The position numbers and the translations under genes were made by a program. From positions 226,424,001-226,488,000 of the forward strand of contig CM097885.1 in the NCBI GenBank assembly GCA_044892525.1: a stretch of DNA of 64,000 nt, read 5' to 3'. A model generated the notes under the pieces. It searched no databases and had not been told where the DNA came from. It saw only the letters and a program-made list of their open reading frames with translations. The first letter of the stretch is position 1; the number at the start of each line of letters is the position of its first letter. Source of the stretch: Schmidtea polychroa (lineage: Eukaryota). Below are positions 14,665-39,380 of the stretch, piece after piece.

Positions 14665-14741
14665 ACTGTTAATCAAACCACCTCAATAGGTAAGTGAAAT
14701 TTAAACAATACCACTGTTAATCAAACCACCTCAATAGGTAA
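14665..14741. repeat. 29-bp direct repeat ACTGTTAATCAAACCACCTCAATAGGTAA in the LTR (enhancer-like duplication; also in the 3' LTR)
   Basis: Copies at 14665-14693 and 14713-14741. Confidence 0.85.
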
Positions 14742-17112
14742 ATCTATTCTACGACAGAACAGAACTCCAGCAACTAACGCACGATAACTCACGAGGACAA
14801 TTCCAAGATTCAAGAGATTTTTACAGAACTAGACGATATTCGAGCATTAACTGATTCGACATAGTACCCTTTTCGACTCAGCCCATACTTGTATCAATCA
14901 TTCGGTAAGGATTTTTGATTGCTTATTTTGAATTTTTAAGTAATGCGTATAGTTTAATAATATTTTTAATTTAAAAAAAATGGTTTTTCTTTTCGTTTGA
15001 TTTTCGAATGCTTTACTTAAATTAATAATTTGCTTAATAATAAATGATTTGCTCGTTAAGAATTATTGATCTTTTATGAATTAATTTGTATGAATTATTG
15101 GAGACTATTCAATTTTGCGAGAAACGTGGCGTTGAGATACTCTATGTCATGGTGTGAGGTGCCTTCGGAAGCTCCACCGGTGGACATAGGGTATTTCAAT
15201 CACGCAGCTAGATTGGGCCGAAATGTGAGGGCTTCTTCACGGGTCCAATTGCTGAAGGTGCGACTAAAATCTATAGGTAGATGGTGGCAGAAAATTGATA
15301 GTCATGTAGTGATTGAAAACAAAGATATGTAAGAAAGGAATCGGGGAATTTTGATGTATTCGCGCAGTGATTGAGGGTGTCACACTATCGTTTTCGAATG
15401 TCGTGTTTGCTAAGAAAAATTTTTTCTCCATCATCAATGTAAGTTGTGCGTCAAAAAGTGTTCAAACCTTAGTGAGGCTATCTGTGACATATCTTCGATG
15501 CTCACACTTTTCACTCAGAATCTGTTCCGACCAATTGTTAGCCTAAAACCCTTTGAACTATTATTCCGTTCACCTAAAAGTTCTCTTAAAGACATAGTTG
15601 CAAGGAAGCTCAAAGTAGATTGCTTCAGATAATTATTGGAATTATTCCAAATGACTGTTTACGGATAAATTGTAGAACTACGTAAAATAATTTATTACAG
15701 ATAATTGTTAGAACTTCATAAAACGAGTTTGTTCCAAATAAAATTTTGAATTACATAAAATAATTTACTTCAATTAAATTTTTTTGAATTATATAAAAAT
15801 ATTTACATACAATTAATTATCATAATTACATAAACTATTGGCATCAAATAATTTAACAACAAAAAATGCAACCAATTCGAACCAAGAAAATATATTTCTT
15901 CAAGTTAGCCGATAATCTTGTTAAATACGAAATTCCAGTATTACATGAGGTTGGCAATCCAGCAGAGATAGGAAAAAAATCCTCCAGCACTTAGAGAGTA
16001 GATTGGTAAACTAGGCTTGAGTAATTAAAGACGAAAAATCCACCCTTGGAGCAAGCTATATCCAACATTTGCAATACAGATAATTATAATTTTTCCAATA
16101 ATCCGGTGAGAATTAGTAAATCATCACCATATGCCGTAGAATTGTGAGCGAATACGCGGTGGATAAAATTCTGAGAGAATGCCATCATGCAAACATTCAA
16201 CGCCTGCATTTGTAGTATAATTAAGTGTGTGAAAGCGCACCTTGCATGCGTCACCAGTTGCAGACTTACCTAATAGCCAAGTACAGTAGGCAAAGTCACA
16301 CACGCATCTACTCATGTAAAATTAGATCGAACATGCCAATTAAACTACCGACAGCTATCAGATTTCACCGCTCCGGATTAAGAGTCAATCACTGGGCTGA
16401 CATTACCTTATCTACCCAGCAGGTATGGTCGACTACTAGCTCACACTGATACCGTGCTCAGTTGTTATAAAGACACTAATTTTTAATGATAAACTCGATC
16501 ATAATTATGATTATTCTCTCTTTATTATCTTAGCATGAATGGCACCGAAATTATTTCATTTTTTGACATAGTTATCATTAATATTAATATCGAATATTGT
16601 TAAATAAATATTATGTAAACCAGGTAAAACATATGTGAGTAATTAAAGAGAATGAATAAACAATTAAAAATTTAAATAACCTTCCGTTTATCCTGTAGGA
16701 ACTAATCAACAGGCATTATGGACCCCTTTTCCATAGATAGTCACTCGACCCCAGTATATGATACACTCATTAAAAGCACTCGTACGGGGGGAGAAGTCGA
16801 CAATTTAAATCGATTCTCGGTAAACGTGAAATAATGACTCCAAGCGGATTAAATAAATAATCATTTTCATCGACCTAGAATTTCTCTCACAAATAGTAAT
16901 ATCTTCCTTTTCCTTGTGCGAAATCTGGTTTGATCGATTTATCTCCTTATAATTAAAGCCCCGAAAGGGTACGAGAATCCATCGCGTAGTAGAACTTGTC
17001 TTGACTGGTAAACCCATATTTTTGTCTATGATCAGTACAGTATGAATGTAGTCAGATGGTGACACTCCCGCTGATTTAATTATTTTCATTTTCTTTTTCA
17101 CAGTCGCTCAAA

Positions 17113-17706
17113 ATGTTGCCAAATTCCAAGCCCGTTCTTCGACCTTGTTTTTCTTGCTCCGAGAGTCGGGCGCAGAGGAGCCTAATAAAAGAGCAGTCGG
17201 AGGCGCTGCACAAATTATACGTCCAGGCAGCAACTACAAGGAAGATCGCGAAGATCCCAATAAATGAAGCCAGTAACCTTTTCCCAGCACATCATGATAT
17301 CTCTGGCGGGTCTTCTTCTCCAGTCGGAAAGTCCTGCCATGGGTGCGTGGAGACCGAGCTCTCACCTAAAGAACCAGAAATCATCTTTACCGGAACCAGT
17401 AAAGTGCTACCTGCGATAGCATCCACCTCAGCAGCACCCTCGACCAACCAAACAGCATCGAAGCCAAAGCGTCGGCAATTATCGAGAGCAGAACGAAAGA
17501 AAAAACAGCGGGAACGCATAACCGCCAAACAGAACCAGAAATCGTCGGATCATCCAATCAAAGTCATCAACCCTCCTGCAGCAATCGATTTAGCATCAGT
17601 GATCTCAGGGCGAATCATCTCCGCCGCTGGTGTTACCTGGGAGGAAAACGCCTCTGAGTTTTTCGATTTGGAAGATCTATTGGCAGACTCGGAGTGGGAG
17701 AAATGA
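17113..17706 (+). CDS. LTR-encoded ORF, 5' LTR copy (197 aa, lacking 52 aa in frame)
   Basis: Identical to 43110-43859 except for a 156-bp in-frame deletion. Preceded by the acceptor-like TTTTCTTTTTCACAG (AG 17102-17103) and followed by AATAAA at 17841. Confidence 0.6.
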   Translation: MLPNSKPVLRPCFSCSESRAQRSLIKEQSEALHKLYVQAATTRKIAKIPINEASNLFPAHHDISGGSSSPVGKSCHGCVETELSPKEPEIIFTGTSKVLPAIASTSAAPSTNQTASKPKRRQLSRAERKKKQRERITAKQNQKSSDHPIKVINPPAAIDLASVISGRIISAAGVTWEENASEFFDLEDLLADSEWEK

Positions 17707-18277
17707 GAACTTCCCCGTAAAAAGTCTTCGTTCTTTGAATTGACCTGAACATTATCTGATAACATTTTACCTTGTCTCTTTTCCCGTTGTCGTGGACTTT
17801 ATTGTATAGGTGTTAGATATATTTGTGTGATAATCTTAATAATAAACCATTTTTGTCTGCATACGTTTTTTCTTGTGCCCATCTTAAGACAGTTGAGTTG
17901 AAATTGGTAAATGGTATTGAGAGTCATAAAATCATGAGGAGCATTAGTCAGTTGGTAAACTCAGCTAGAAATATTGCGATGGGGCGACAGAATGAGTAGA
18001 CGTAAGTCCTTCTATCGGCAGTCAGGGTTGGGAAGTCGAGGCCTCAGTAAGGAGTAGTCCGAAGGAGCTGGCTCACCTGCTTACTGGCGTCTCGCCGGCA
18101 TAGCACAGTTCCAACGTGAAGCAATTCACGGGTGCTATGTTGGAGTGTAAGTTATGTACGGGTCCCGCTCGGCGATGACCAAATAAATGAGGGGCGAAAT
18201 CGAGGTGGCATTCATCCTCTAGACTAAAGTTACACTAGAAAGGGGTCATCCGAGTAGTGTACCCGCAACATAATTTT

Positions 18278-18295
18278 TGGGGGCTCAGCCGGGAT
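18278..18295 (+). promoter_or_regulatory. Primer-binding site, tRNA-Pro type
   Basis: TGGGGGCTCAGCCGGGAT lies 7 nt after the 5' LTR and matches the MLV tRNA-Pro PBS TGGGGGCTCGTCCGGGAT at 16/18. Confidence 0.8.
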
Positions 18296-18595
18296 TTAGA
18301 GTGAAATTTCCATTGACTAGTGTAAACTGGATAAGGATGTTATTGAGTGAATTTCTGTCGAATAGAGTGAACTCACCGGGGATCAGTGATTTCAATGGGT
18401 TAGCGAGTGCAAATTGACTAATGCTTATCGAATCTTATTATAAATCACGAATAGAAAATAATAAAATTAAAAATATAAATAAAGCAAATTTAATGATGGA
18501 GAAATAAGATAAAAGCAAAATAATGATAACGAGTTAGAAAAGAGAATGTTTGACGAAACGAAGTCATATATTACTGAAACATTTTTTTTATAGAC

Positions 18596-19081
18596 ATGAC
18601 GGAATTCGTAGACCAGATACAACAACTAATCAACTTCATAAACATCGAGAATGACTCCCTTAAAACGCTGACACAAAAAAGAGAAAGAATTAACATCATA
18701 CTACTTCAAGCAATCGGGCAAACACCAGTCGTCCCCAACCACATGTTATTAGCCACAGGACTAAGTCACCCAGAGGGGAAGGTAAACCCGGAAACCGTGT
18801 ATCAATGGTATCAAGAGAGATTGAACCACCCAGCATTAAATCTTGATTATCAACGTATAAAAGATCCACTAAATACCATGTCAGATACAATCGAGCGGAA
18901 AATACAAGAAAAACTGACTCTACTACGAACTTGTCGTGCTTGTAAACTTCGTCCTATTCGCGTACTGTTTTTGCCGTGTGGACACCTCAGTCACTGCGAA
19001 GAATGTGTGAACGATTTAAAACGATGTACGATATGTAGGCATGAAATAAAAGAAACTCATATGGTTTATTATGGTGAATAA
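18596..19081 (+). CDS. IAP/MYLIP-type C3HC4 RING protein without BIR (161 aa), putative E3 ligase
   Basis: C-terminal CRACKLRPIRVLFLPCGHLSHCEECVNDLKRCTICRHEI. An acceptor-like TTTTTTTATAG ends 2 nt before the ATG. Confidence 0.85.
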   Translation: MTEFVDQIQQLINFINIENDSLKTLTQKRERINIILLQAIGQTPVVPNHMLLATGLSHPEGKVNPETVYQWYQERLNHPALNLDYQRIKDPLNTMSDTIERKIQEKLTLLRTCRACKLRPIRVLFLPCGHLSHCEECVNDLKRCTICRHEIKETHMVYYGE

Positions 19082-19427
19082 AACTGTTATAGATACAATG
19101 ACATCTATGAACATCAAATTGATACTGACAATTGAATGAGAATGAATGTAATTGTTGTGTGAAATTTTATTAACGTTTTAAATTGTATTTCTATGACGAA
19201 TAAATTTTTGTTGTGAACTGAGTAATTTATGGCTTTTAATTTTATTTTTTTTTATAACTTTGGTTTGGAATCAAACGAAAAGAAAACCGAAATAACGTGG
19301 AATTAGTCCCAATATAGGCTGTAAGGGTATAAACCGAGCCACCTTAGGGCGGTACGTTCTATCATACGATAAAACCAATTGGGAGGGGATAACCGATCAA
19401 CCTAAGTGAGGAGCGTAGGGCGGGGTA

Positions 19428-19499
19428 CCATCGCAAATGATGAGAAGTTTCTGCGGTATGACTGATCACCATGCCAATGTAGAAATGGATCATCGCGAT
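19428..19499 (+). other. Conserved leader stem-loop with palindromic loop (DIS/packaging-like), element 2
   Basis: Loop ACTGATCAC (19461-19469) closed by GGTATG/CATGCC; outer stems TTTCTGC/GTAGAAA, GATGA/TCATC and ATCGC/GCGAT. Confidence 0.6.
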
Positions 19500-19690
19500 C
19501 GTCGTGCGTTTTGAGCAAGGGGGGAAAGGGGACACACTCCCGAGCGGTAAAGATTAAGTCGACAAATTAAAAATAGACAGAGAAAATGGTAATCTTGAGT
19601 AAAAGAAGAAAGAGAGAAGTAGAAGCATGCAGAGTAAAGAATGTTAAAGCCGAGCTGTAAAATAATCCAGCCGGTCAAGGAAACGAAAAC

Positions 19691-20017
19691 TGAGCTGTTG
19701 TATAGTGCCAGCCAGTCGTAAGATCGAGTTGTCGAATAGTCCAACCGATCAGAAGGAGGAAGATTGAGCTGTTGAATAGTGCCAGCCAGTCGTAAGATCG
19801 AGTTGTCGAATAGTCCAACCGATCAGAAGGAGGAAGATTGAGCTGTTGAATAGTGCCAGCCAGTCGTAAGATCGAGTTGTCGAATAGTCCAACCGATCAG
19901 AAGGAGGAAGATTGAGCTGTTGAATAGTGCCAGCCAGTCGTAAGATCGAGTTGTCGAATAGTCCAACCGATCAGAAGGAAGAAGATTGAGCTGTTGAATA
20001 GTGCCAGCCAGTCGTAA
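19691..20017. repeat. 74-bp tandem repeat, 4.4 copies, in the element 2 leader
   Basis: TGAGCTGTTG starts at 19691, 19765, 19839, 19913 and 19987; the units are nearly identical. Confidence 0.95.
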
Positions 20018-21382
20018 AGGCCTAGAAAAGCGAGAGATAGCAGTTAAGCTACAATGAGCTAATATCTGAATTAATAGAGAAAGGGAATATCAAAGCTAGC
20101 TAGAAACAAATTGAATGTAATTACGGAAATTTGAGTTTAGAGAGAAAATAAACGAGCTCGTGGAAAAGATAATAAGATTATAATGAAAAAGGAAAGGGAA
20201 GAAGGAAACGAATTAAAGAGATAATGGAAAATAAAGAATAGGCGAAACGATGATAATGAGTAAAGAGGAAAGTAACCAACTAATTAAAGGGATCCCAGTG
20301 AGGTAGAGAAACTCTACGGAATATTTTTTTGGTTAAACCGGGAAAATGCATTTTATTGGTTCCAGAGTAGAACCGAGCGTAATAATAGTAAATATGAAAA
20401 GTAAAATAGCGACAACAGCGCAAAAGGAATAGGAAAACGAAGGGGGGTAATAAGCAGAGACCGACAACGACCTATTTTTACTATAATTGATAACGAATAG
20501 ATAATTATTACGACTTGATAGATAATTGTTACTACCCCATATAGATAATTTAAAATCGACGAAAAATTCGGGCTGATGGGAGATTATAACCCGCGGAAGT
20601 AATTGCATAAAAAAAATAGGGGAAGCATAAACAGAACCTAAAAGGTGTCTGTGTTCGAACGTTGTTGAAAGAATGATGAAGTCGTGTAAGCAAATGCAAC
20701 ACGAGATCATTTTTTCATTTTAGATATCAAACCAATCCAGTCAACCAAGACAATCCAGAACCTGCACAAAAGGAATTCGAAGAAATCGACAATCGACCAA
20801 GAATAAATTCATTCAGAACCCGCACCGAGAGACACAGCAACCGGAAGACTCCAGAACGGAAGAAGATACAGATAGCGATATCTCCAACTTCGAACGAATC
20901 ATCGATATATTCAACCTTATAATATTAGCAGCCATCTGTCAAGGACTAGTGAATCTCCTCAGAATCACAGTAGCAGATCCATACAGAATATTTATCGAAG
21001 GAAACACAATCAGAACCGAACTCGTCCAATTCAATAGCCGCTAATTACCAAGAAGCGTAAGAAAGGAATCACGGATAAACCCAATCTTAGATCTTCAAGT
21101 AAGCCAGGAGACGTATTATTTTCAGGAGACGAATTACAACAACTCAAAAGAGGACGATCTATTAAACAGCAAAGAGGAATATCGCAAGGATCAAGAAGAA
21201 CCAATCAAGTACCTATATTTGACCAAGAAAATCTCGGATACACCCCTAGTCGATCTCGAAGCAGAGAAAGTCTGTCCGACATCACTAATAGTTTAGCAAC
21301 GTCAACCGAGGAATTATCAGCCCAAAGTTTAGTCACATCGTTAGACAATTTAAAAGAAACAGACGAATCTAGAACACCAATC

Positions 21383-24300
21383 ATGACGAATGTCGTAAAA
21401 ACCGACGAGTATAAAGAGAAGTTCAGAGGAGAACCGTTCAACGGAAATGCAAACAAGCTAGCACCGTTCATAACTAATTTTGAAGTTTATATCACTGTGT
21501 GTGGATGGACACCCGAAGCAATTAGTAAAAGGATGCCGTTGTTTTTGTGCGATAGCGCATTAGAAGTATATTTAGAAGCTAAAGAGAGAGATACGAAATT
21601 AGAAAAGTGGGAAGATATCAAAACATTCCTGAAGAAAACCTTCGGAGCCAGTAAGCCAGTCAACCAGGCGTTGGGCGAACTAGCAAATAGGAAACAAAGA
21701 GTAAACGAATCGATAACATTATACGCCAGTGAATTGCGGAGATTAGCGAAGAAAGCAATGAATGGAAAATTACCCGAAGAAAATCTGATCGGTTATTTCA
21801 TAGAGGGATTACGCCGAGAAGAAGTAAGAGCCTCAGTAGGTTGTCAAATGTGCAAAACATTAGAGGAAGCCATAGATTGGGCTACAAGATGCGAGCTCCA
21901 CCTTCCAGCTCAAATGAATATTATGCAAGAGGAGGGAAGGATAGCGACAGCAATAGCGAAAGCGGATAACGGAGATAACAACAATCAAGAACTGAAAATG
22001 AATCAATTTATACCAGGAGCGCACCAAATTTTCAAACCACCACAAGGACGATCAAATGGGAATAATGGTAATCGTAACAACCTAAATAATGAGAACAATT
22101 TCAATAATCGACGAAATATGAACGATAACAAGCAGTGCCGAACATGCGGTAAACCAGGACACTGGGACAGAGATTGCTATAGAAATTCAAATTGTAATCG
22201 TTGCGGACGGCGTGGACATACCGAAAATGTATGCCAATTAAGAGGTTGTTTTAACTGTGGTCAGCCAGGTCACATCTCCAGAGATTGCCGAGAAAGGGGC
22301 CAACAACAACGACCACCACCGCGAAATAATAATTATATGGCGAATCCGCAAAGACAAAACAACCCTAGCGAAGGAAAACAAATGAACGTTATGCAGGAAA
22401 TCTCGCAGATGAAACAGATGATGCAACAAATGATGAGACCGAGACCGGAATCAGCACCACAACAAACCCAGAATATACGTATGATGAGGAGTACCGAAAA
22501 TCTCAACAATTATGAAGTGCATCAACATGTACAAGAATGGCAAAGACTACAGGCCGAGGAAGAGAGGATAAAACAAGAACGCAACCAACAACGACAAGAA
22601 CAACCATTGCGAATTAATATGATGAAGTTAGTAAAAGACATGAAAAGCCAGTATTGCTACAATTACGGGAAAAACCCAAGGGTAGTACCCATGACTGAAC
22701 CAGAAAAGGTAACAGAAACAACAACGGAAATGAAAACAGAGAATTCAACCACGATTTTAAAAGGAAACCAGAGAATTCAGAAAATATTCTGGAAAAAGAT
22801 AAAAGATAAAATCGAAAAAGAACATAATAAAGCGAAAGCCGAGACAGAAGATGAAAATAACAAGAGCAAGGAACAAACCAGTCAATTAAACCACCAAATG
22901 CTACAAGAATTAGAATCAGAAGAAACAACGATATTCGAAAGAAAGAAACTAAAGAGAGTACCAAGGATGAGAAATTTGCAAATCAATATGATGAAAAGGA
23001 CAAAAGATGTAGCATCGTCAGACGAAGAAGAAGATTATGTAAGTAGTTTGGGGGGAGAAATACTACAGCTAAACGAAATAAGCGAACCTCCAAAAGGGGA
23101 AATCAAAGAGGAAGAAAGCGAAAGCGAGATAACAAGTGGAAGTGAAGACGAGGATATCGAAATAAAGTTGAGAAAAGCAAGGGAGGAAGCGATAAAACAG
23201 GTAGCCGAAATACTCCCGGCGGTAGTGAGAAACCAAGAGTTCATCGACGTAATATCATTCAGGCGATTCGTGCAAAAAGTGATGAAATTGGAAAGAAACG
23301 AGAAAGATTTAATACCAAACGAGGAAAAATCAATTATAAAAAAGTATATGGAAAAAATGAAGCAGGCAGATACCACGCGGTATGTAATAAAAATCGGAAC
23401 GAGTAGAGGACTTGAAAGAATGTGGATAAAAAATACAGTCACCGACGAACTTTTCGATTGGATACGAGAACATTTGGGAGATTCGAGAAAGAAAGAATAT
23501 CTGTATCAATACCAAGGAGAACAGATCAAACCAGACATGCACTTAGTAGATGCACTAATATGGCCAGGAGAAACGCAAATACTGAAGTTGCATAAAGAAA
23601 AACAACCAGCCAACCTTTACGATTGGGCTAAAGACGCCAAGGCAGAATATGATTTTAATATCAAATTGAAATTAGAACAAATAAAACAATGTACTCTGAG
23701 ACGAAACCTGGATAAGCTGATCAAAAAAATTCAAGAACAAGTAGAAGACAACTGGGATTTACTCATCACCAGACGAGCCCCAGCCATGTACGAACTAATG
23801 ACCCAATTGCGAGATACAGAAATGCTCCGGATGAGTGATTGGAGAACCATAAATTTGATCCACAAATATGGAAGGTTAAAAGAAACCCAGCCACAGAGGT
23901 TGGAAATAACCATATGGTTACCGAACGAGGAAAAACGACGAATAAAAATGAGCAATCAGAGTACAGTGGATGACTTGGTATCAAAAATAAACCAAGAGAT
24001 AACAGAAAAGGTACGTAGCGAAAGTATTGATGGTATGGTGGATGATGTAGTCATGATGTACGATAAAATAATATTACGAGCGGAGGACGACACCTCGTTA
24101 AGCGAAATGGGTATGTGGGACAATCATCAGATAATCAGGATAGTACCAATGGATGAATTTCGAACAAGAGATGTAACCTATCAAAAAGAAATACGAGACC
24201 GGATGAAAACGTTATATCAAAAATCTACGGAAATAATTAAAATCCACCAACAATGGTTAAAAGAAAAAGAACTACAAGGAAAAATCACGAAACTAAGCAC

Positions 24301-26428
24301 CAGATCCTGCAGACGAACCCCATGGGAAAGAGTGTGGAATGCAGAAAATAAGGAATGGGAAATCCGGAAAGGGATCTTCGTAGAAACAGACATTGGTGAG
24401 ACAGAAAGTGAATCGGAGGAAGAAGAAGAGGAACCTCCAGAATATGAAGAGGAAGCAAGGGTACAGACATCAGATGACGAAGGCGAGACGGATGTCACAT
24501 CAGAAAGCGAAAATGAAGCGAGACATATTCATGCAATGAGGAAAAAGGAACGTGAATATGCTGATATGGACGGCGAGGAAGCAATAGAAGCAAGAGAGCG
24601 AGAAGAGAAAGAAAGATATAAACAATTAGGCGATATTTTAGCAATGGGAGCGAAAAATCAAAAACGCCAGGTAGTAGCGTTGGCTAATATCATCTTAAAA
24701 ACATCAGAGAACATCCACAATCTGAGGGGAATGGCAAAGGCAATAGAGGAATACCGGCAATATAATGAATGGTATCCAGAACAGCTAGAACAAATTATTC
24801 GAAAATGGAGAAATCAGGAATGGGCACAAGACACTCAGGAGAGGTATCACATCCGAATCAAGTATCCGGACAAGAGCATCGAGGAACTAGAGGTGCATCC
24901 AACAACAAAGATTAGAGAATTAAAAAAGAAATTAGCATATGAAACTCCATTCCATCTGCAACTATTCGGAAAATCACTAGACGATAATGCAGACGTCGGA
25001 ATAACACCCATGAGATTGGAAGAGACAAATGTGTTAACAATGGCAGAAACGTTGGGAAAGCCGTTAAAAAGGAAAAGTAAAATTACTAAACTAACAAAAG
25101 GCAGTTTGAGTACTCCAAGTCCGAACAAAGCACCAAGTAAATCTAATGAAACTGAAGAAGTTGAAGAGATAATCCTGGAAGATAGTGACGATGAACCAGG
25201 AGAAAGATCACCGCTATTAGTGAGATGGCCGACAGGAGCCGAAATGTGGACTAATAACCAGCCATCAACGAGTTATCAACAACCAACGAAACTGAACATC
25301 AAAGAAATCATCGACAATACTACGGAAACCGAAACGGATGAACAATTCCAGAAGCAAAGAGAACCAACGAAAGTAACACCAGAAGGTCAAACCGATAAAA
25401 TAATAGACGAATGGAATGAGTGGCTAAGAAATAACGATAGCTCATTACCCAGAACGGACAACGAAAGAAATCCGAATTACGAAAATACCAGAGAAGCCGG
25501 AACGATGATGGAAAAACGGGCAAAAGGAAGACCTAAGAAACAAGGAGAAAAGTCTGAGTTCAAAACCAAAGAACAATTAAAGCAAGAACAAGGGCAAGTT
25601 CGATTAGAAAAATTGGATAAAATAGTATGGGATCTAAAGGAAGCCCAACCAACGACCGAAAGAGGAGAAAAATGGATACGAGAATTGATCAAAGATATGT
25701 TAATAATAACAAACCCACAACTTAGACGTTCGTGGCAACGGAAAGTAGCCAGCACGGAAGCTAGACAATTATGGCACACCATTTCGGGGATAATCCCAAA
25801 GTTAATCAAAGAGAAAACGAAAACCACCAAAACGGATTGGGACGAAACAAAGAGAGTGATTGAGCAGCTCACGACAAATGCAAATGATGACGAACATCAT
25901 CTAGTGGTAATCACTTATTTGATGTATAATTTGATGGGACTAGCTGCGAGGAAAATACCAAATAAACAGTTTGCAAATCATGTGGAAATGACCGTTTCAA
26001 TCATAGAGAATACTATTGAACCACATATTATTCGTGCCGGAGGATGGAAAAGACTTATACAAGCGCCACGAAAAAATGAGCAAGAAAGGTCGATGCAAGT
26101 TAGATTGAAGAAGTTGTTGAATGAACTAGAATGGGAACTACCCATGAAAGACCCAGCAAGCCGAAAAGCATCGATAAATTCGTTAATGATGACTATGATG
26201 ATATGGATGTTGTGCACAAGTGGAGCAACAGGTTTTACCATCTACGATTGTGATAATATGATCACCCAACAAATTAGACATAGTAAGAACAAAAGTTACT
26301 TACCATGTATATCAAGAATCAGATTTCATCAGAACGCAAGCAAGGGAATGCGTGGTATCAAAAAAGGTACTCGCATATTACTGTGGACAATATTCGTATT
26401 CGACTCTTATACTACCTGGTCTGGATAA
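21383..26428 (+). CDS. gag: Gag polyprotein: capsid, 3 CCHC, 3 ubiquitin-like folds, Bcl-2-like domain, signal peptide and start of the envelope glycoprotein
   Basis: Capsid motif FRGEPFNGN...ANRKQRVNESITLYASELRRLA. CCHC knuckles at 22136-22288. Ubl-like segments at 23378-23597, 23897-24148 and 24842-25042. BH2-like IEPHIIRAGGWKRLI. Signal peptide ending GATG|FTIYDC. The frame is open from 21038. Confidence 0.93.
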   Translation: MTNVVKTDEYKEKFRGEPFNGNANKLAPFITNFEVYITVCGWTPEAISKRMPLFLCDSALEVYLEAKERDTKLEKWEDIKTFLKKTFGASKPVNQALGELANRKQRVNESITLYASELRRLAKKAMNGKLPEENLIGYFIEGLRREEVRASVGCQMCKTLEEAIDWATRCELHLPAQMNIMQEEGRIATAIAKADNGDNNNQELKMNQFIPGAHQIFKPPQGRSNGNNGNRNNLNNENNFNNRRNMNDNKQCRTCGKPGHWDRDCYRNSNCNRCGRRGHTENVCQLRGCFNCGQPGHISRDCRERGQQQRPPPRNNNYMANPQRQNNPSEGKQMNVMQEISQMKQMMQQMMRPRPESAPQQTQNIRMMRSTENLNNYEVHQHVQEWQRLQAEEERIKQERNQQRQEQPLRINMMKLVKDMKSQYCYNYGKNPRVVPMTEPEKVTETTTEMKTENSTTILKGNQRIQKIFWKKIKDKIEKEHNKAKAETEDENNKSKEQTSQLNHQMLQELESEETTIFERKKLKRVPRMRNLQINMMKRTKDVASSDEEEDYVSSLGGEILQLNEISEPPKGEIKEEESESEITSGSEDEDIEIKLRKAREEAIKQVAEILPAVVRNQEFIDVISFRRFVQKVMKLERNEKDLIPNEEKSIIKKYMEKMKQADTTRYVIKIGTSRGLERMWIKNTVTDELFDWIREHLGDSRKKEYLYQYQGEQIKPDMHLVDALIWPGETQILKLHKEKQPANLYDWAKDAKAEYDFNIKLKLEQIKQCTLRRNLDKLIKKIQEQVEDNWDLLITRRAPAMYELMTQLRDTEMLRMSDWRTINLIHKYGRLKETQPQRLEITIWLPNEEKRRIKMSNQSTVDDLVSKINQEITEKVRSESIDGMVDDVVMMYDKIILRAEDDTSLSEMGMWDNHQIIRIVPMDEFRTRDVTYQKEIRDRMKTLYQKSTEIIKIHQQWLKEKELQGKITKLSTRSCRRTPWERVWNAENKEWEIRKGIFVETDIGETESESEEEEEEPPEYEEEARVQTSDDEGETDVTSESENEARHIHAMRKKEREYADMDGEEAIEAREREEKERYKQLGDILAMGAKNQKRQVVALANIILKTSENIHNLRGMAKAIEEYRQYNEWYPEQLEQIIRKWRNQEWAQDTQERYHIRIKYPDKSIEELEVHPTTKIRELKKKLAYETPFHLQLFGKSLDDNADVGITPMRLEETNVLTMAETLGKPLKRKSKITKLTKGSLSTPSPNKAPSKSNETEEVEEIILEDSDDEPGERSPLLVRWPTGAEMWTNNQPSTSYQQPTKLNIKEIIDNTTETETDEQFQKQREPTKVTPEGQTDKIIDEWNEWLRNNDSSLPRTDNERNPNYENTREAGTMMEKRAKGRPKKQGEKSEFKTKEQLKQEQGQVRLEKLDKIVWDLKEAQPTTERGEKWIRELIKDMLIITNPQLRRSWQRKVASTEARQLWHTISGIIPKLIKEKTKTTKTDWDETKRVIEQLTTNANDDEHHLVVITYLMYNLMGLAARKIPNKQFANHVEMTVSIIENTIEPHIIRAGGWKRLIQAPRKNEQERSMQVRLKKLLNELEWELPMKDPASRKASINSLMMTMMIWMLCTSGATGFTIYDCDNMITQQIRHSKNKSYLPCISRIRFHQNASKGMRGIKKGTRILLWTIFVFDSYTTWSG

Positions 26429-28030
26429 AGAAATCGTATCAATACAACGAGAGGACTGTAAAGAGCTATTTAGAACCGGAGCGCTAAAAATGCATAACGG
26501 AGTGACGATTCACGGACAAACTGGAATGATTAAAACCGAAAGCGTTTATGTATCCGGAAAAGTAAAATCATCAGATGGGTCATGTAACGGAGGTACGTAT
26601 ACGATCCGAGGCGAGGTAATATCGGGAGTAGTAGTGATCGAGTCTTACACGGTCGAATTAAAAGAATACGAAGCGCAATTTGACGCAAATAATTACCAAA
26701 TGAAGACCAACCCAGCGTGTAGAGCTACAGAAAACGTATGTAGGACAGGAGTATCAACTATAATCTATGAAGCTAATACCCAAAAATGCCGACTCCAACT
26801 GTTAAAAAGTGCTTTGTTCAATGAAGTAAAAGGAGAAATATATGAGAACGAGAACGACGAGGATGGAAACGACAGAGTGAGAATGCGAAATGGAAAACCA
26901 ATGCCACCATCTCCCAGAGAAAAGAGACTTTCAACGCAGAAGACACCAACAGCATTAATCACGGACGATCCAGATCTAGGTATGAGATTTATCAAAGAGA
27001 AAGAAACCACCAAATGTGACAGTATAGTATATAAAACCAATTACGCAGGTATCTATATGTCGAGACAAATAATCGATAGAGCAGTGGGAAAGATAGCAAC
27101 GGAGGACGTAAAACTATACTTATATGCAAATAATAAAATGGATTTTCTATTTCATCGCGGACAAACGACCTTGCAAAAAGTATATTACGATCTGATACAA
27201 AACGATTGTTCATTGAATAAAGAAATATTGAAAACAAAGCTAGCTATTGCGATAACACACCCAGATAACACGATGCCATCACTCCCATTACCAGACGGAC
27301 ATTTTGGTAGAATGGTAGGAGAAGTGATGTACACATACCAGTGTACCAAGACGTATGCACGAATGCCAGAAAAATCCATACTACCCGAAAAGAGATGTGC
27401 AAACGAATTAGAAATCCGTTATAAGGGACAAAATCGATTCGTCCAACCAGTCACGAGAATTATGAATCCAGTGGGTTTCTACCCAAATCTCTTTAACTGT
27501 TCTAATGCATACGGACCTTTATACGAAAGACCCGATGGGAAATGGATGATGCTACCGGGAAAAACCATATCCGAGGAACCCAAGAAATTTGGATTAATAG
27601 AACTCGCCACAGAGCTGGATTTCAAACCTATAGACGTGTCAAACGGTGGTATGTATTCCCCAGAAGATCTAGAAACAGCACGACTTAACGTACTCTTCCC
27701 AGCCATACGAGAATCCATTTTGTCAAATATGGTTACAATAACGGGGGGAACAAATTATCAATCAGGCCCGAATTACGAGCTGCTACTATCGCCAGACCAT
27801 TTTCAACAAGCCACATCAAACATGATGAAAGCAATGTGGGGAAGATTCTTAGTTTTTGGACAAATGATGGCCGGAATACTGGGGATCATACTCATAATTC
27901 AGATAGTCAGGGTAATACTAACACAAATGTTAGCTTGTTTTGATATATACAAGCGAGAAAAGAAAGTAAATTGGAAAATGATAGTAGGCTTTTTACCATT
28001 TTTAGCTAAAACCATGGTATTACATGGTCA
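26168..28030 (+). other. env: Chuvirus-G/herpes gB-like class III fusion glycoprotein (split by a frame change near 26260)
   Basis: Signal peptide + YDC; C-V-x6-YYCG; DGSCNGG; NNKMDFL; C.L.KEIL; GEVMYTYQC; RCANEL...FVQPVTRI...C...GPLY; NGGMY; TM FLVFGQMMAGILGIILIIQIVRVIL. Confidence 0.75.
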
Positions 28031-31000
28031 CTCAAAAGACATCCATCGGATAAAGCGATTGATTAAAATCTTAACAAAGATTAAAGGAACAAACGAGGAA
28101 GTAGGTAGACGATTCCGAAAAACCATGTACGATGAAGCAACAAGAAGACAATTGAAAAAGAACAAGCCAAAATTCTTGGACCGATTTAGAAGCCAATCAT
28201 CTAACAGCGATAGTGACGACGATGATAACGGGAACGATAAATGTTTATATCCAAACAGAAACCCAAACGAAAAACCAATGGAAACGGCACCATATTGGGA
28301 AAAGGAAAAGACAAATACCTGGATCGCCAATGGAAGCTATATACCGCCAGATGTCGTGGGACCACAGGCAGCTTTGACCATGACACAAAACATGTATCCG
28401 CAATTACCGAGTCAACCCGGTATGCATTATATGCCAACACGACGTACCAAAAGTGTAGATCAAGCAGATGACGTAAGAACAATAGCAGCGATGAGCTTAC
28501 CTGGAGGTCCAGCAGTAACAGTCATGATTCAAATCAATGGTAAAGAAACCAATGCTATGATAGACACAGGAGCTAATGTATCAGCGATAGCGATTAATCA
28601 AATCCCCAGTAAGCACTGGAAAGATATCGAATCAACAACAATTCACATCATAGCATGTAGTAAAGAAACAGTGGACGTGGTCGGAAGATGGTGGACTACA
28701 TTGAGATACCAGGATAACGAAATCGAAACGTATTTGGCAGTAATACCAAACCTTAGCGTACCATGCATAATCGGAACGGACCTGATGCCGGAATTATTAA
28801 AAGAAGTGGTGATCGATTTAACAACCATGTGTTTAAAAGACAAAACAGGCAGAATATGCAAAATGAATGCCATAATCAGATGTCCAGAGAAAATTGTGGT
28901 ACCAGCAAAATCACAGATGATTTGTCAGATAAAAGTGGATACGGGTATGGAAGGAGAAGTTATCTTTGAACCAAGCAAGTCATTTGAAAAGCGACGAGAG
29001 TTACCACTCGCAAGGGAAATAATCACAATAAACCAAGAAGGAGTGATACCGCTCAACATCACGAATTTCGAAGAGGAAGACAAAATCATTTATGAGAACG
29101 AAAAATTGGGAAGATTGACCCCAATGATGGACATAGAATTACCGAAAGTGACCAACGAGATGATCAAAGATGATGAATTATGGACAATAGATAGTATGTT
29201 GTTGACGAATGATGAAAAGAAAAAATTGCACCGATTGTTGGTAGAATATAAAGATATATTCGCCATCTCAGATTTAGACTTGGGTACATGCGATGTTACC
29301 CTACATGCAATACCCCTCATAGATGAAACTCCAATTGCATTAAGACCATACAAGCTAGCAGAAATGCAAAAAGAAATAGCCGAAGCAGAAGTACAAAAGA
29401 TGCTAGACGCAAAAGTAATCGAACCGAGTTGCTCACCCTGGCAATTCCCAGTGGTCATGGTAAAAAAGAAAGATGGCACCCAACGATTCTGTATCGATTA
29501 TCGGAAGTTAAACGCAGTAACCAAGAGAGATACCTATCCATTGCCGGACATCAATGAAATGTTATTGATGTTGCAAGGGGCAGCATATTTTACTTCTTTA
29601 GATCTAAAAAGTGGATACTGGCAGATTAAAGTCAAAGATGAGGACAAAGAGAAAACAGCTTTCACGCTGGGACGAGATCTATATCAGTTCAGAAAAATGC
29701 CATTCGGACTGACCAACGCACCAGCATCATTTCAAAGGTGTATGAACTTCGTCACGCATGGAATCAAACAATGTATGGTATATATTGATGATTTGCTAAT
29801 CTATTCAGCGACATTCGAACAACATCTGGAGGATATCCGAAATGTATTTATTAGATTAAGACAATGGAAACTCAAGCTCAAACCTTCGAAATGCGATTGG
29901 GCAAAGGAAAAAGTCACGTTTTTAGGACACATAGTGTCAGCTAAAGGAAAGGAGCCAGACCCAAGAAACATTGAGAAAATAAAAACATGTCCAGCACCGA
30001 AAACTGTCACCCAAGTTCAGGAATTTCTAGGATTATGCGGATACTATCGCAAATTTATCAAAAATTATGCAGGAATTGCAAAACCAATCCAGGAATTAGT
30101 AAAGAAGGACATTTCGTTCATTTGGGGGAAGGAACAACAAGAGGCGTTCGAAACGCTGAGAGATAAACTAATCGAAGCACCTATCCTCGTACACCCAGAT
30201 TTTAAGAAGCCATTTCTATTGGCAACGGATGCAAGCGGGTACGCGGCAGGCGCGATTCTGGGACAATTAGACGATGAAGGAAAAGAGAGAGTAATCGGGT
30301 ATTACAGTCGAACATTCAAAAAGCACGAAAAGAACTATTCGGTAACAGAACGAGAAGCATTGGCTATAATACAAGCTATCAAACACTTCCGATATTTACT
30401 ATGGGGACATGAGATATGCATAACCACAGATCATCAACCATTAGTGTGGTTAGGGCAACATAAAGAAGCGTCCAGTAGACTGATGAGATGGGCCATGCAA
30501 TTGCAAGAATACTCCCCATTTATAAAATTCAAAGCAGGAAGAGCAAATGCCAACGCCGACTGTATGTCAAGATTTATTTTTCCAGATTTGGTGGATTCAG
30601 AAATGCAACGCATATGCTTAATAGTAGCGGAAGATTTGGATTTCTGTCAATTGCGAAAAGACCAACAAGGGGACGCGGAATTAAAACAAATTATCGATTA
30701 TGTAAAAACCGGAAAGACGGATGCATATGCGAAAGACCCAAAATTAAAAGAACATATGGATAAACACCGACACCGATATATTATAGAAAAAGATTGGTTG
30801 CTGATAATGGATGGAGAGAAGAGGTTAATGTGTATACCGGAAAACCGACGAAAAGAGTTACTAACGCAATATCACGATGGGAGATTGGGAGGACATATGT
30901 CATCGAAAAAGACGTTAGCAAGAATGAAACAGAAATATTTTTGGCCTACGTTAACTGAAGATGTAACCGAATGGGTAAAAAATTGTCTAACTTGTGCAAC

Positions 31001-34000
31001 CAGGAAGAATACTGGATCGAAATGGAAAGCACCTTTAACGCCAATGCCAGTACCAATAGAACCAATGACAATGATATCAATGGATGTAGTCGGTCCATTG
31101 CCAGAATCGGATAAAGGAAACGTTTATATTCTAGTGATTACAGACTTTCTCACGAAATTTCCAGAAGCATTCGCGATGCCAGACCAAAAAGCTAAAACAA
31201 TCGCAAAAATTTTGGTAGAAGAGATATGTTGCCGATATGGAACACCAAAACAAATATTAACCGATCAGGGAACTAATTTTATGAGTGAGATAATGAGCGA
31301 AGTAACAAATTACTTCAAAATAGCAAAACTAAGAACATCTCCATATCACCCTCAAACCAATGGGATGACGGAAAGATTTAATGGAACGCTTATACAAATG
31401 TTATCAAACTACGTCGACCGTCACCAACGAGATTGGGACGAATATATAAACCTATGTCTTATGGCATACAGAATGTCGATTCACGCATCAACAAAAATGA
31501 GCCCATTCAAATTAATGTACGGAAGAGAATGTAATATGCCAATGGACCTGGAATACCAACCACCGATATCGCAGTATATGGAGATCGACGATTATGTTAC
31601 GAAATTCAAGGAAAGGATGCAAGAAATTTGGGAAACTGCGGGATTAAATATCAAGTTCTACCAGGAAAGTTATAAAGATTTACACGATCGAAAGAAAAAC
31701 GTGAAGCAACATACGTTTCAAACAGGTGATTGGGTAATGATAGAAACCCCGGAATTAATTCCAGGAACCACAAGAAAATTACAACGGAACGGAAAAGGGC
31801 CATATGAGATCCTATTTGTAGGCGAAACCAACGTTAGAGTGAAGTTGATAAATAATCCATTCACCAGGCCAATATACGTAAACGTGGCACGATGTAAATC
31901 AATTCCAAAAACCGCCACCAGTCAACCGGAAGGTCGAACATTAACCACACGTTCGCAAACATACAGAATGAACATGATGCAACAACTCGCAGAACCTATC
32001 CCTGGACGATCGGGCATACAACCATCGGAAGCGGAAAAAATCGTACGAGAGGTAAAGATAAAATTACCCGGATGGGCAAAAGATCGATTAGATTTCGAAA
32101 TATTAGGAGGATTATTGACGATGATCGAAAACTATGCAAATAGAGAAAGGACACACCCGTTATTGCGAGTAGTTAAAAGTCAATGGCCAATATTATTTAC
32201 AATAACGGATCATTATGGAGACACACCATTACACAAACTCATGAAAGTAGGTAACAACGAGCAAATACTAGAAACAATAGAAGCATTTCACGACTGCAAG
32301 CGATCAACAGAACAAGAAAACAACCAAGGTTACACACCATTAATGATAGCAGCAAACAGAGGCAAAACCAAAGACATTATAACCGCATTACTTGATACGG
32401 GATCAAAAATAACTACACAAGACCACGAGCGGAAAAATGCACTACATCATGCTATCGAAGGGAAAAGTACCGAGGCGTTCACGTCATTGATGGAACTACT
32501 ATCATATGAGGACAATCGAGAAGTCGGAAACATGTATGAGGGATTGTTAACAGCGATCAAAGAAAAACTGACGACAATTACCGGAATATTAATTACATGG
32601 AGAAATCCAATTCAAAACGATTATATGATCAACGTAAACGAAGCGTTCACGAAAGGAGAGAACACGCTGATGAGAGAAGCTATGAAAGGACATCATTTAT
32701 TCGAAATTCCGAATCAATTACTAGAACGAGGGATAAAATTCACAAATCATAAAGATGAACAGTTAGCAAAAAAGCGAATCGACACATTCGAAAAATCAAT
32801 ATTCCAATTTACTAGCCAAGTACGAAATAAATATTGGGAAACGGTAAGTGTGTTATATATGATGGACACAATGAATAACATCCGCGAGAATTACCTGGAT
32901 ATTATCCAAATACTTACAGCAGAGGAACGAATCAATAATCCAAACGGAAAGAAAACGAAAATAAGGTATGAGAAACCGAGGGAATCAAAGTCAACAACGA
33001 ACCAAACGGTCACAAACCACGTCATTGAAACAAAATCAATGAGTATAGATCAAGAGGCAATAATACGCAAAGCAAAAGAAGTGTTCTTTGAGGAAATGCT
33101 AGAGCTGCCAGACGAAATAATATTGTCCAAAATAATAAAAGCCGTACACACATACGCAAGAGATCAAACCACGGGTTTAGATATCGGGAAAATCAAAACC
33201 TTCTTGCCTCGAGCATTTACGATGGTAACAAAGGATTCCCGAACACCTCTACAACAAGCAATATTAGCTGCAAAAGAGAATAGAGCAATAACGATCATGA
33301 GAATCCTTGGGGAGATGGGCGAGGAAACCAACACGAAAAATGAACAAGGTGAAACCGCCATGATGTATGCAGCTATAACGAAAATACACCCAAAAACACT
33401 CCACATCCTACATCAATCAGGATCGAAACTAGACGAAAGGTCCAATGAAGGAAATTCCACCTTGGACTGGGCAACCATACAACTAAACTTAGAAATGATC
33501 AGATTTATTTGCAAAAATGCGACAAAAGAAGAAGTTGAAAATATGTGCAAAAACACATCTCAGTTTCAATGGAATACGGTACGGAAAAATCTAGAAGCAA
33601 TGAAATTATTATTAACCTGGAGAGTACCACAAAATAATAAATATGCGATAAATGTAAACGAATTCTACGAAAACGGAGAAAATGCGATGGTAAAGAATAC
33701 CCTAACTAAGGGGGGGACGCCTAAAATTATTTTAATAGTATTAAATAGAGAAGACCTAAAATTCACGCAAAATCAGAACGAGCAACAACGAATTGGGAAA
33801 CATCGTCGTATGCAATTGAGAGAGTTAGTTAAAGAATGGAATAGAAAGAGACATGCTGCAACGGGTAGAAAAGAGTTTGAATTCGAAGCAAAATTAGCAA
33901 GAAACAGAGTGCTAACAGCATATCGCAGATTATTGAACGATATAAATGTCGAGGACGACATTTTAAATGACAGCGGGGGAGATAAACACGATGACAATGA

Positions 34001-35186
34001 TGGAAAAGGCCGGAAAGAGGATAAAGGGAAAAGAGAACCGGAAGAGGATAAACCGGAAAACAAGGATTCGGATACGAAAAGAGAGGGAAACAGGCCGGGA
34101 ACCAAGACCAAAGAGGAGGAAAAATCGAATAATGGAAAACAGAGGGTATGCCTACCTTTCACTAACAAAGAAATAGAGACAAATATGATATTAATGATAA
34201 TTATGCTTACCATGATAGAGTTAGTAACAGCTCAGGGAGGGACGAGAACGATAAAAGAAACCAAAGAAGCGGAGAATCAAGATAGCAAAGAGGATGAACT
34301 AAAGCAAGAAAAGAAAAAGCAAGCACAAGAGCAGCAGTGGGATTTAAAGGAAGAATGGGACTTAAAGGAAAGGTGCATACTAGGAAGATGCATGTCTAGA
34401 GCGTATCAGAAACTAGTACTGATAAATGAGGACACAGAACCAATAACAGAAGTAAGAATACAAGAAGCATACCGAAATCGAGACGGGAAGAGAATAACGA
34501 ACGTCAAAGGAAAAGAGGTACACCTAGGAAAAGGTGGTGAGGTAGTAATAACGCAGCTCCAACCTAGAAAAGAGCACAAAGTCTGTATTTCAAGATTAGG
34601 ACCAGGTGAGAGATGCCATCAATATGTGACACAGCAGCAGCCGCCGAAAGAATACACGGTTTGTATCTGGAGGAATGAATCAAAAAGAGAATGCCGACGA
34701 TACCCGGGGAAAAGAGGAAAGAAAAGAAAAAACCACGACGAAAAGGACGAAGGGGGAAAGCACAAGAAAACCGGCGAGGAAGCTCAGGACAACTATGTTT
34801 CGGAGGAAGAAATGGAAAAAATACAAAAGATGGCAAAGGAGGGTATGAACGAGGAAATAGCAAGAATACGAGAGATGATGGAAGGAAATGGCAAAAAAGG
34901 AAACGAGAAAAGTACAGAAGCGATATCAACATTAACAAACAAGGAAAAACCAGAGAGTATAAGCGTGAAGCAGATGATGTGGATCAGTGGGATAATAATA
35001 ACAGGGGCATTCCTAATCATAACGGGGGGAACAATAAAAATAATTAAAGATAAACGACATCGCGGAGAACTAGAGATGACCCAAATCAGAAATTTCCAAC
35101 ATCGAGTGAAACGACCAAGTGATATCAAACAAGAACAGTGGGTGGAGGCCTGGAACGCTCAGCGCCCTCCAAACTCACGTATATAG
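26352..35186 (+). CDS. pol: Env-Pol polyprotein: class III fusion glycoprotein body, TM, aspartic protease, RT, RNase H, integrase, 2 ankyrin modules, second type I membrane protein
   Basis: The frame is open from 26262. PR AMIDTGANVS (DTG 28563). RT YIDD (29781). RNase H LATDASG...EREALA...TDHQPL. Integrase H-H-C-C zinc site, DVVGPL, TDQG, ERFNGTL and GPYEI. Ankyrin GDTPLH/GYTPLM/KNALHHA and SRTPLQ/GETAMM/GNSTLD. Confidence 0.95.
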   Translation: MVSKKVLAYYCGQYSYSTLILPGLDKEIVSIQREDCKELFRTGALKMHNGVTIHGQTGMIKTESVYVSGKVKSSDGSCNGGTYTIRGEVISGVVVIESYTVELKEYEAQFDANNYQMKTNPACRATENVCRTGVSTIIYEANTQKCRLQLLKSALFNEVKGEIYENENDEDGNDRVRMRNGKPMPPSPREKRLSTQKTPTALITDDPDLGMRFIKEKETTKCDSIVYKTNYAGIYMSRQIIDRAVGKIATEDVKLYLYANNKMDFLFHRGQTTLQKVYYDLIQNDCSLNKEILKTKLAIAITHPDNTMPSLPLPDGHFGRMVGEVMYTYQCTKTYARMPEKSILPEKRCANELEIRYKGQNRFVQPVTRIMNPVGFYPNLFNCSNAYGPLYERPDGKWMMLPGKTISEEPKKFGLIELATELDFKPIDVSNGGMYSPEDLETARLNVLFPAIRESILSNMVTITGGTNYQSGPNYELLLSPDHFQQATSNMMKAMWGRFLVFGQMMAGILGIILIIQIVRVILTQMLACFDIYKREKKVNWKMIVGFLPFLAKTMVLHGHSKDIHRIKRLIKILTKIKGTNEEVGRRFRKTMYDEATRRQLKKNKPKFLDRFRSQSSNSDSDDDDNGNDKCLYPNRNPNEKPMETAPYWEKEKTNTWIANGSYIPPDVVGPQAALTMTQNMYPQLPSQPGMHYMPTRRTKSVDQADDVRTIAAMSLPGGPAVTVMIQINGKETNAMIDTGANVSAIAINQIPSKHWKDIESTTIHIIACSKETVDVVGRWWTTLRYQDNEIETYLAVIPNLSVPCIIGTDLMPELLKEVVIDLTTMCLKDKTGRICKMNAIIRCPEKIVVPAKSQMICQIKVDTGMEGEVIFEPSKSFEKRRELPLAREIITINQEGVIPLNITNFEEEDKIIYENEKLGRLTPMMDIELPKVTNEMIKDDELWTIDSMLLTNDEKKKLHRLLVEYKDIFAISDLDLGTCDVTLHAIPLIDETPIALRPYKLAEMQKEIAEAEVQKMLDAKVIEPSCSPWQFPVVMVKKKDGTQRFCIDYRKLNAVTKRDTYPLPDINEMLLMLQGAAYFTSLDLKSGYWQIKVKDEDKEKTAFTLGRDLYQFRKMPFGLTNAPASFQRCMNFVTHGIKQCMVYIDDLLIYSATFEQHLEDIRNVFIRLRQWKLKLKPSKCDWAKEKVTFLGHIVSAKGKEPDPRNIEKIKTCPAPKTVTQVQEFLGLCGYYRKFIKNYAGIAKPIQELVKKDISFIWGKEQQEAFETLRDKLIEAPILVHPDFKKPFLLATDASGYAAGAILGQLDDEGKERVIGYYSRTFKKHEKNYSVTEREALAIIQAIKHFRYLLWGHEICITTDHQPLVWLGQHKEASSRLMRWAMQLQEYSPFIKFKAGRANANADCMSRFIFPDLVDSEMQRICLIVAEDLDFCQLRKDQQGDAELKQIIDYVKTGKTDAYAKDPKLKEHMDKHRHRYIIEKDWLLIMDGEKRLMCIPENRRKELLTQYHDGRLGGHMSSKKTLARMKQKYFWPTLTEDVTEWVKNCLTCATRKNTGSKWKAPLTPMPVPIEPMTMISMDVVGPLPESDKGNVYILVITDFLTKFPEAFAMPDQKAKTIAKILVEEICCRYGTPKQILTDQGTNFMSEIMSEVTNYFKIAKLRTSPYHPQTNGMTERFNGTLIQMLSNYVDRHQRDWDEYINLCLMAYRMSIHASTKMSPFKLMYGRECNMPMDLEYQPPISQYMEIDDYVTKFKERMQEIWETAGLNIKFYQESYKDLHDRKKNVKQHTFQTGDWVMIETPELIPGTTRKLQRNGKGPYEILFVGETNVRVKLINNPFTRPIYVNVARCKSIPKTATSQPEGRTLTTRSQTYRMNMMQQLAEPIPGRSGIQPSEAEKIVREVKIKLPGWAKDRLDFEILGGLLTMIENYANRERTHPLLRVVKSQWPILFTITDHYGDTPLHKLMKVGNNEQILETIEAFHDCKRSTEQENNQGYTPLMIAANRGKTKDIITALLDTGSKITTQDHERKNALHHAIEGKSTEAFTSLMELLSYEDNREVGNMYEGLLTAIKEKLTTITGILITWRNPIQNDYMINVNEAFTKGENTLMREAMKGHHLFEIPNQLLERGIKFTNHKDEQLAKKRIDTFEKSIFQFTSQVRNKYWETVSVLYMMDTMNNIRENYLDIIQILTAEERINNPNGKKTKIRYEKPRESKSTTNQTVTNHVIETKSMSIDQEAIIRKAKEVFFEEMLELPDEIILSKIIKAVHTYARDQTTGLDIGKIKTFLPRAFTMVTKDSRTPLQQAILAAKENRAITIMRILGEMGEETNTKNEQGETAMMYAAITKIHPKTLHILHQSGSKLDERSNEGNSTLDWATIQLNLEMIRFICKNATKEEVENMCKNTSQFQWNTVRKNLEAMKLLLTWRVPQNNKYAINVNEFYENGENAMVKNTLTKGGTPKIILIVLNREDLKFTQNQNEQQRIGKHRRMQLRELVKEWNRKRHAATGRKEFEFEAKLARNRVLTAYRRLLNDINVEDDILNDSGGDKHDDNDGKGRKEDKGKREPEEDKPENKDSDTKREGNRPGTKTKEEEKSNNGKQRVCLPFTNKEIETNMILMIIMLTMIELVTAQGGTRTIKETKEAENQDSKEDELKQEKKKQAQEQQWDLKEEWDLKERCILGRCMSRAYQKLVLINEDTEPITEVRIQEAYRNRDGKRITNVKGKEVHLGKGGEVVITQLQPRKEHKVCISRLGPGERCHQYVTQQQPPKEYTVCIWRNESKRECRRYPGKRGKKRKNHDEKDEGGKHKKTGEEAQDNYVSEEEMEKIQKMAKEGMNEEIARIREMMEGNGKKGNEKSTEAISTLTNKEKPESISVKQMMWISGIIITGAFLIITGGTIKIIKDKRHRGELEMTQIRNFQHRVKRPSDIKQEQWVEAWNAQRPPNSRI

Positions 35187-35346
35187 AAAGGAATATGACT
35201 GTATATAATTGTAAAAAGTAAGTATATCTTATGTATATAACAGTACTATATCTTTATATAAGCGCGGTATCAATATTATACAATAACGGGAATCATAAAA
35301 TGACATTAAATTTAAATAAGAGTTGAAAAGTGTATATAAATTAAGA

Positions 35347-35706: not shown

Positions 35707-35791
35707 ACCAAACCTAGCTTAAAATGTAAATAATTGTAAATAAAATATCGAACCTGTATCGATAAGAACTATTTGTACATATAATTATAGA

Positions 35792-39339: not shown

Positions 39340-39380
39340 ATTAAGGGTCACTAAAACCAATTGTAAATAAACCATAATGA

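Follow-up and report, generated by a model that had tools for sequence, protein, structure and literature searches.

The window analysed here, a 64,000-nucleotide stretch of the Schmidtea polychroa genome (assembly GCA_044892525.1, contig CM097885.1, positions 226,424,001 to 226,488,000 of the forward strand), contains a giant Ty3/gypsy-type retroelement with long terminal repeats (LTRs), whose polyprotein carries a Bcl-2-like domain between Gag and the envelope glycoprotein (Env). All positions given below are window positions, and the element, its parts and the genes and open reading frames (ORFs) described here lie on the + strand. The whole element occupies 14277..44423 (30,147 bp) and is bordered by a 4-bp TTAA duplication (14273-14276 and 44424-44427). 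Self-BLAST and the end sequences delimit a 5′ LTR at 14277..18270 and a 3′ LTR at 40274..44423, both with TG..CA termini. These LTRs, of about 4 kb each, are approximately 99.9% identical except for one length difference of about 152 bp. With LTRs this similar, the copy is very young; it is also nearly intact. As deduced from Pfam matches and ORFs, its polyprotein gene (21383..35186) encodes, in this order, gag, the Bcl-2-like domain, env, pol and ankyrin repeats. The gene runs through two frames with a single frameshift, located in env, and has no internal stop.

The original prediction had proposed that a Bcl-2-like domain is embedded in a retroelement Gag polyprotein. Both peptides quoted in it are in frame in the + strand ORF opened by the gag ATG at 21383, and the domain extends from 25601 to about 26062 (25601..26062 on the basis of Pfam, an AlphaFold model and Foldseek). 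Since the same frame opens with a capsid-like Retrotrans_gag domain (21536..21817, Pfam E 3.2e-9) and three CCHC zinc knuckles (22136..22288, Pfam zf-CCHC and pattern count), the Bcl-2-like segment is part of a Gag-initiated polyprotein. A full HMMER search with the domain against 1.84 billion representatives returned a single match, P0001, from a Joint Genome Institute (JGI) metagenome contig. A word-indexed profile search contributed just one more sequence, P0002, which is another copy of the family of P0001. Metagenome and viral contigs were also scanned by pattern with an alignment of the domain (A1), and nothing was found.

The Bcl-2 family, PF00452, was the best Pfam family for the window domain (E 0.02, 15.8 bits, profile positions 27-100 of 100), with the matched core at 25826-26047. 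It was also the best family for P0001, in the same register (E 7.7e-5, 23.6 bits, profile positions 36-100), and both alignments stop at profile position 100 on the tripeptide GGW. As a control, other parts of this ORF were searched against Pfam, and none matched Bcl-2. At the level of sequence, the likeness to Bcl-2 exceeds chance, though it stays under curated thresholds. GGW occurs only once in the gag-initiated frame (26039-26047, pattern count) and is invariant among the copies. It closes a block resembling the Bcl-2 homology 2 (BH2) motif (25991..26047) that is the most conserved stretch between the window and P0001, 14 of 28 residues being identical. The earlier proposal that BH2 is kept is borne out by these alignments. 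The companion proposal, that the NWGR form of BH1 has been lost, also holds, as a pattern scan of the gag-initiated reading frame found no NWGR. In the alignment used for structure prediction (A4, below), the relatives retain of BH1 only an Arg immediately ahead of the central helix. The position of the central buried helix is taken by the most hydrophobic helix of the domain (25889..25948; model helix 97-116, hydropathy maximum). The domain is preceded by a GRPKK AT-hook-like motif (25526..25540), detected by pattern and alignment and also present in the metagenomic relatives. It is followed by a charged linker of 44 residues (26048..26179, from composition and hydropathy).

A first AlphaFold model, computed from the single sequence of a 236-residue piece, had a predicted local distance difference test score (pLDDT) of 53. 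Foldseek matched it to designed armadillo proteins and 14-3-3 proteins, and this model was discarded as meaningless. With alignment A4, whose three rows are the window domain, P0001 and P0002, the model reached a pLDDT of 68.9 and a predicted template modelling score (pTM) of 0.71, with eight to nine helices. When this model was compared with the PDB using Foldseek, all 50 of the 50 best matches were Mcl-1 chains, with probabilities of 0.97-1.00 and E-values of 0.013-0.07 over about 160 aligned columns. The model is a helical bundle round a central hydrophobic helix. The assignment is of no more than moderate confidence, because the template modelling (TM) scores of the Mcl-1 matches were just 0.40-0.49. 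A fold other than the Bcl-2 bundle had been named beforehand as the outcome that would speak against the domain; within the moderate quality of the model, which retrieves Mcl-1, no such fold was seen. Matches in BFVD, a collection of predicted viral structures, were weak (E above 0.1, TM score at most 0.45) and included canonical viral Bcl-2 homologues. The original prediction had also named poxviral Bcl-2-like folds for comparison. No likeness to them was recovered: no poxvirus-type Bcl-2-like protein was present in the BFVD top 50, and no family of this type matched the window domain or P0001 in Pfam at E up to 10. Overall, we consider it very probable that the segment 25601-26062 is a divergent homologue of the Bcl-2 family and shares its fold.

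The domain of P0001 is about 29% identical to that of the window and is found in the same layout, that is, domain, linker, hydrophobic segment and start of a Monjiviricetes-type glycoprotein. In each of the two metagenomic copies (P0001 and the P0002 copy of its family), this part of the gene is interrupted by one frameshift or more. Two remoter GAG-ENV-POL relatives, P0123 and P0124, have Env proteins 40% and 36% identical, respectively, to the window Env. In Pfam, the equivalent segments ahead of their Env signal peptides gave no Bcl-2-like signal. Because it is absent from P0123 and P0124, the Bcl-2-like domain looks like a lineage-restricted acquisition, inserted between the AT-hook-like motif and the Env signal peptide. 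An ankyrin block after the integrase is common to the window element and one of the two remoter relatives. Contigs L004 (ENA ERZ25039515) and L003 (ENA ERZ2271731) represent remoter relatives of this GAG-ENV-POL kind, in which Env is in frame and the aspartyl protease is present in additional copies. In L004, the integrase is followed by ankyrin repeats, and there is no TRAF or Bcl-2-like match; a downstream ORF of L003 weakly matches an exonuclease.

After the linker begins env (26186..27953), which encodes a class III-type fusion glycoprotein (Monjiviricetes_fusion, Pfam E 2.4e-59) and contains the single frameshift mentioned above. A transmembrane anchor of Env was predicted at 27837-27950. 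From hydropathy, the Env signal peptide was placed at 26186..26233, with its hydrophobic h-region at 26183-26215, and it is the candidate membrane tether of the Bcl-2-like domain. This hydrophobic segment is Met-rich, starts 44 residues past GGW and is 11-15 residues long. In P0001, the equivalent segment aligns to Monjiviricetes_fusion positions 4-50. To judge from these features, the hydrophobic stretch past the domain is primarily the signal peptide of the downstream Env. The original prediction had likened it to the C-terminal membrane anchor of Bcl-2. A hydrophobic segment does follow the domain, but it is short and belongs first of all to Env. A role of the Env signal peptide as anchor for the Bcl-2-like domain is nevertheless plausible.

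The element contains further modules. Upstream of gag, an accessory ORF (18596..19081) ends in a C-terminal RING finger (zf-C3HC4_3, Pfam E 8e-12), and about five tandem copies of a 74-bp repeat are found between this ORF and gag (19651-20020). The Gag-frame region ahead of the Bcl-2-like domain gave a weak match to PI3K_rbd, a ubiquitin fold (23879-24013, Pfam E 0.0035), and a weak ubiquitin-like match (24851..24955, Pfam ubiquitin E 0.042). Downstream of env, Pfam identified a retroviral aspartyl protease (28521..28796), a reverse transcriptase with RNase H (29460..30512) and an integrase with H2C2 zinc domain and rve core (30834..31403). These are followed by two ankyrin-repeat blocks (32256-32495 and 33222-33506, together 32256..33506). 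The C-terminal module of the polyprotein (34170..35048) combines a signal-peptide-like segment with a transmembrane segment, as seen in a transmembrane scan, and has no family match in Pfam; it may be a second membrane protein. Outside the polyprotein gene, downstream of pol, a TRAF-like accessory ORF (35792..37180) contains RING and MATH domains (Pfam MATH E 3e-26), and looking up its exact sequence returned no record. It is followed by three ORFs without family match in Pfam (37374-38429, 38578-39339 and 39381-39950, spanning 37374..39950). The LTRs also contain ORFs without family match, at 17113-17706 and 43110-43859, whose length is altered by the difference of about 152 bp. Modules of cell-death or signalling type, namely RING, TRAF-like, ankyrin and ubiquitin-like, thus accompany the Bcl-2-like domain in this element. 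Pfam detected neither BIR nor dUTPase nor Smc in the element, and scanning the window for Rfam families and tRNAs gave no match.

Outside the element, the window contains a long exon of the host gene for RPC1, the largest subunit of RNA polymerase III (49027-51873), identified by Pfam and by protein search. Its ten best named matches are all from flatworms, at 44-46% identity, and one unnamed protein is 92% identical. Upstream of the element, an ORF of 1523 residues (3029-7600) encodes a second, different Gag-like protein, about 880 residues of which align with the element Gag at 31% identity. In its C-terminal third, a signal-peptide-like segment (6104-6172), a region containing Cys and a transmembrane segment (7247-7330) were recognised, and this third shows weak similarity (E 6e-4) to the membrane module that ends the polyprotein of the large element. 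Since env, pol and a Bcl-2-like part are all missing from this ORF, it may be a relative that has undergone deletion. The stretch upstream of the element also contains AT-rich tandem arrays (11469-13547), and a repeat of about 700 bp with 82% identity flanks the element (9808-10503 and 58901-59595).

The architecture of the element resembles that of the planarian Burro elements. The Burro families, GYPSM1/Burro1 to Burro4, are said to have Jurka 2007 among their sources. Planarian Burro elements exceed 30 kb and, in Schmidtea mediterranea, have a Gag with three knuckles (Arkhipova and Yushenova 2019, PMC6431247). Their motifs include MATH/TRAF, BIR and ankyrin (PMC6431247). As far as the account relayed in PMC6431247 goes, a BCL2-like motif is present in Burro-2 to Burro-4, a finding credited there to Grohme et al. 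2018. A ubiquitin/SUMO-like motif was described directly ahead of BCL2, and an env homology, matching mononegavirus glycoproteins, between BCL2 and the protease, in frame between gag and pol (PMC6431247). The window element is likewise an LTR element of more than 30 kb with 4-kb LTRs and Ty3/gypsy-type protease, reverse transcriptase, RNase H and integrase. It has an in-frame env between gag and pol, which in this copy carries one frameshift, with the BCL2-like motif ahead of it. The weak ubiquitin-fold matches in its Gag-frame region agree with the Ubi2/SUMO-like motif that has been described ahead of BCL2 in Burro (PMC6431247). Regarding expression, BURRO1 is transcribed and is restrained by a PIWI protein (PMC8532177).

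Overall, these data lead us to lean, by a small degree only, towards the following reading. A Bcl-2-fold module would have been acquired by giant, envelope-bearing, Ty3/gypsy-type Burro-like elements of free-living flatworms, and would be made within the Gag-Env-Pol polyprotein, membrane-tethered and pro-survival. The topology of such a polyprotein would be self-consistent, with Gag and the Bcl-2-like domain in the cytosol, the Env ectodomain in the lumen, and Pol again in the cytosol after the Env transmembrane anchor. In this scheme, the Env signal peptide would insert in the membrane of the endoplasmic reticulum, and Env would then be translocated. If the chain were cut behind the signal peptide, the Bcl-2-like domain would remain attached to the cytosolic side of the membrane, at a distance of about 40 residues in both lineages. 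The resulting topology would resemble that of tail-anchored cellular Bcl-2 proteins. So held, the domain could act as a pro-survival factor, keeping the cells that express the element alive, and the companion RING, TRAF-like and ankyrin modules may point to interference with cell-death and survival signalling. Taken by itself, the pro-survival role has about an even chance of being right. A stronger version, in which the Env signal peptide doubles as a Bcl-2-like tail anchor, so that a single translation product gives a membrane-tethered cell-death regulator, maintained by selection within a survival-manipulating suite (RING, TRAF-like, ankyrin), is put forward as a tentative and rather doubtful extension.

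Several observations weigh against the reading of a tethered pro-survival Bcl-2 protein. At the level of sequence, the Pfam gathering cut-off of PF00452, 31.4 bits, was reached by none of the scores, whether from the window (15.8) or from P0001 (23.6). Phmmer and a two-sequence profile, run against all PDB sequences, retrieved no Bcl-2 protein and ribosomal-protein noise only. At the level of structure, alignment A4 is very shallow, the confidence of the model is moderate, all TM scores are below 0.5 and every Foldseek E-value is at least 0.001. The absence of NWGR from the frame, and the fact that the domain is known from two lineages only, count in the same direction. A hydrophobic segment of 11-15 residues is typical of a cleaved signal peptide, unlike a tail anchor of 20 residues. 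Finally, we found no functional study of the Burro BCL2-like motif in the literature searched.

Since the NWGR signature is absent, the main rival is a domain with a Bcl-2-like fold whose job is independent of BH3 binding. Such a domain might modulate signalling together with the TRAF-like, RING and ankyrin modules of the same element, or might be a matrix-like, membrane-proximal structural part of Gag beside Env; its position at the Gag-Env junction and the presence of those modules would be in keeping with a BH3-independent job. Against such a job, canonical Mcl-1 and canonical viral Bcl-2 homologues head the structural matches, no poxvirus-type family appears in either Pfam or the BFVD top 50, and conservation within the domain is highest in the BH2 block. 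We regard a BH3-independent job as a serious possibility, with odds clearly on the lower side. A chance resemblance, in which GGW occurs by accident in an ordinary helical spacer of the polyprotein, could be argued from the uniformly sub-threshold scores, the lack of pairwise matches to solved Bcl-2 proteins and the first, single-sequence model, which matched repeat proteins only. This is hard to reconcile with two divergent relatives matching PF00452 in the same register, one of them with E 7.7e-5, with a predicted fold retrieving Mcl-1 only in the top 50, with control segments of similar composition that gave nothing, and with the agreement of an independent published annotation (PMC6431247). 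Chance is therefore an improbable explanation. That the domain is a true Bcl-2 relic, carried along with its function lost, would fit the lost BH1 signature and the absence from the two remoter GAG-ENV-POL relatives, which shows that it is dispensable for that kind of element, but is very improbable given a frame that is open through the domain in so young a copy and a BH2 block and domain-linker-signal-peptide order kept at about 29% identity.

The pro-survival reading would have consequences beyond this element. Planarian biology depends on stem-cell turnover and on regulated cell death, and Burro-like elements are abundant in these animals. Because such elements are abundant and transcribed in animals that rely on controlled cell death, a functional Bcl-2 mimic encoded by them would be of real interest. 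Were the stronger version true, it would provide the first example of a retroelement Bcl-2 demonstrably under selection, manipulating host survival signalling in planarian cells. To our knowledge, host-type cell-death regulators are almost never carried by retroelements, this being a habit of large DNA viruses.

The domain can be compared with four known systems. It shares with the cellular Bcl-2 family, of which Mcl-1 is the best structural match, the all-helical bundle, about 150 residues long and built round a central hydrophobic helix, as well as a BH2-type block that ends in GGW and a hydrophobic segment downstream. It differs from cellular Mcl-1 in the low identity, about 10-16% in structural alignments, and in the missing NWGR form of BH1; unlike cellular Bcl-2, it lies within a polyprotein, where the signal peptide of the protein that follows takes the place of the "tail". 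As in the viral Bcl-2 homologues (herpesvirus BHRF1 and vBcl-2, and those of African swine fever virus and of adintovirus, Bcl2), a host-type cell-death regulator is found on a mobile or viral genome. However, those homologues are separate genes of DNA viruses, and their structural matches are no closer than Mcl-1. Errantivirus-like elements of Nematoda, Bryozoa and Platyhelminthes have the gag-env-pol order with an Env of class III (herpes simplex virus gB-type) (PMC13524379). The window element shares this order and this class of Env, whereas a Bcl-2-like insert was not reported for those elements, and P0123 and P0124, which are of that kind, are without it.

The closest system is Burro itself. 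Compared with the description of Burro1, the window element has MATH/TRAF as a separate ORF downstream of pol and RING as a separate ORF upstream of gag, and is without a BIR, dUTPase or Smc match. The likeness, which refers to the published description of the architecture, comprises the length above 30 kb, the multi-kb LTRs, Retrotrans_gag and three CCHC knuckles. It further includes the succession of a ubiquitin-like motif, a BCL2-like motif and an in-frame mononegavirus-type env, the ankyrin, RING and MATH/TRAF modules, and the flatworm host. Because the Burro architecture of PMC6431247 is the architecture seen in the window, the finding is a correct rediscovery: a BCL2-like motif at this position in Burro was already published there, and its presence has been in print since 2018-2019. 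To this published picture, the window adds a young and nearly intact copy, a second lineage with the domain, a predicted fold and a topological case for membrane tethering.

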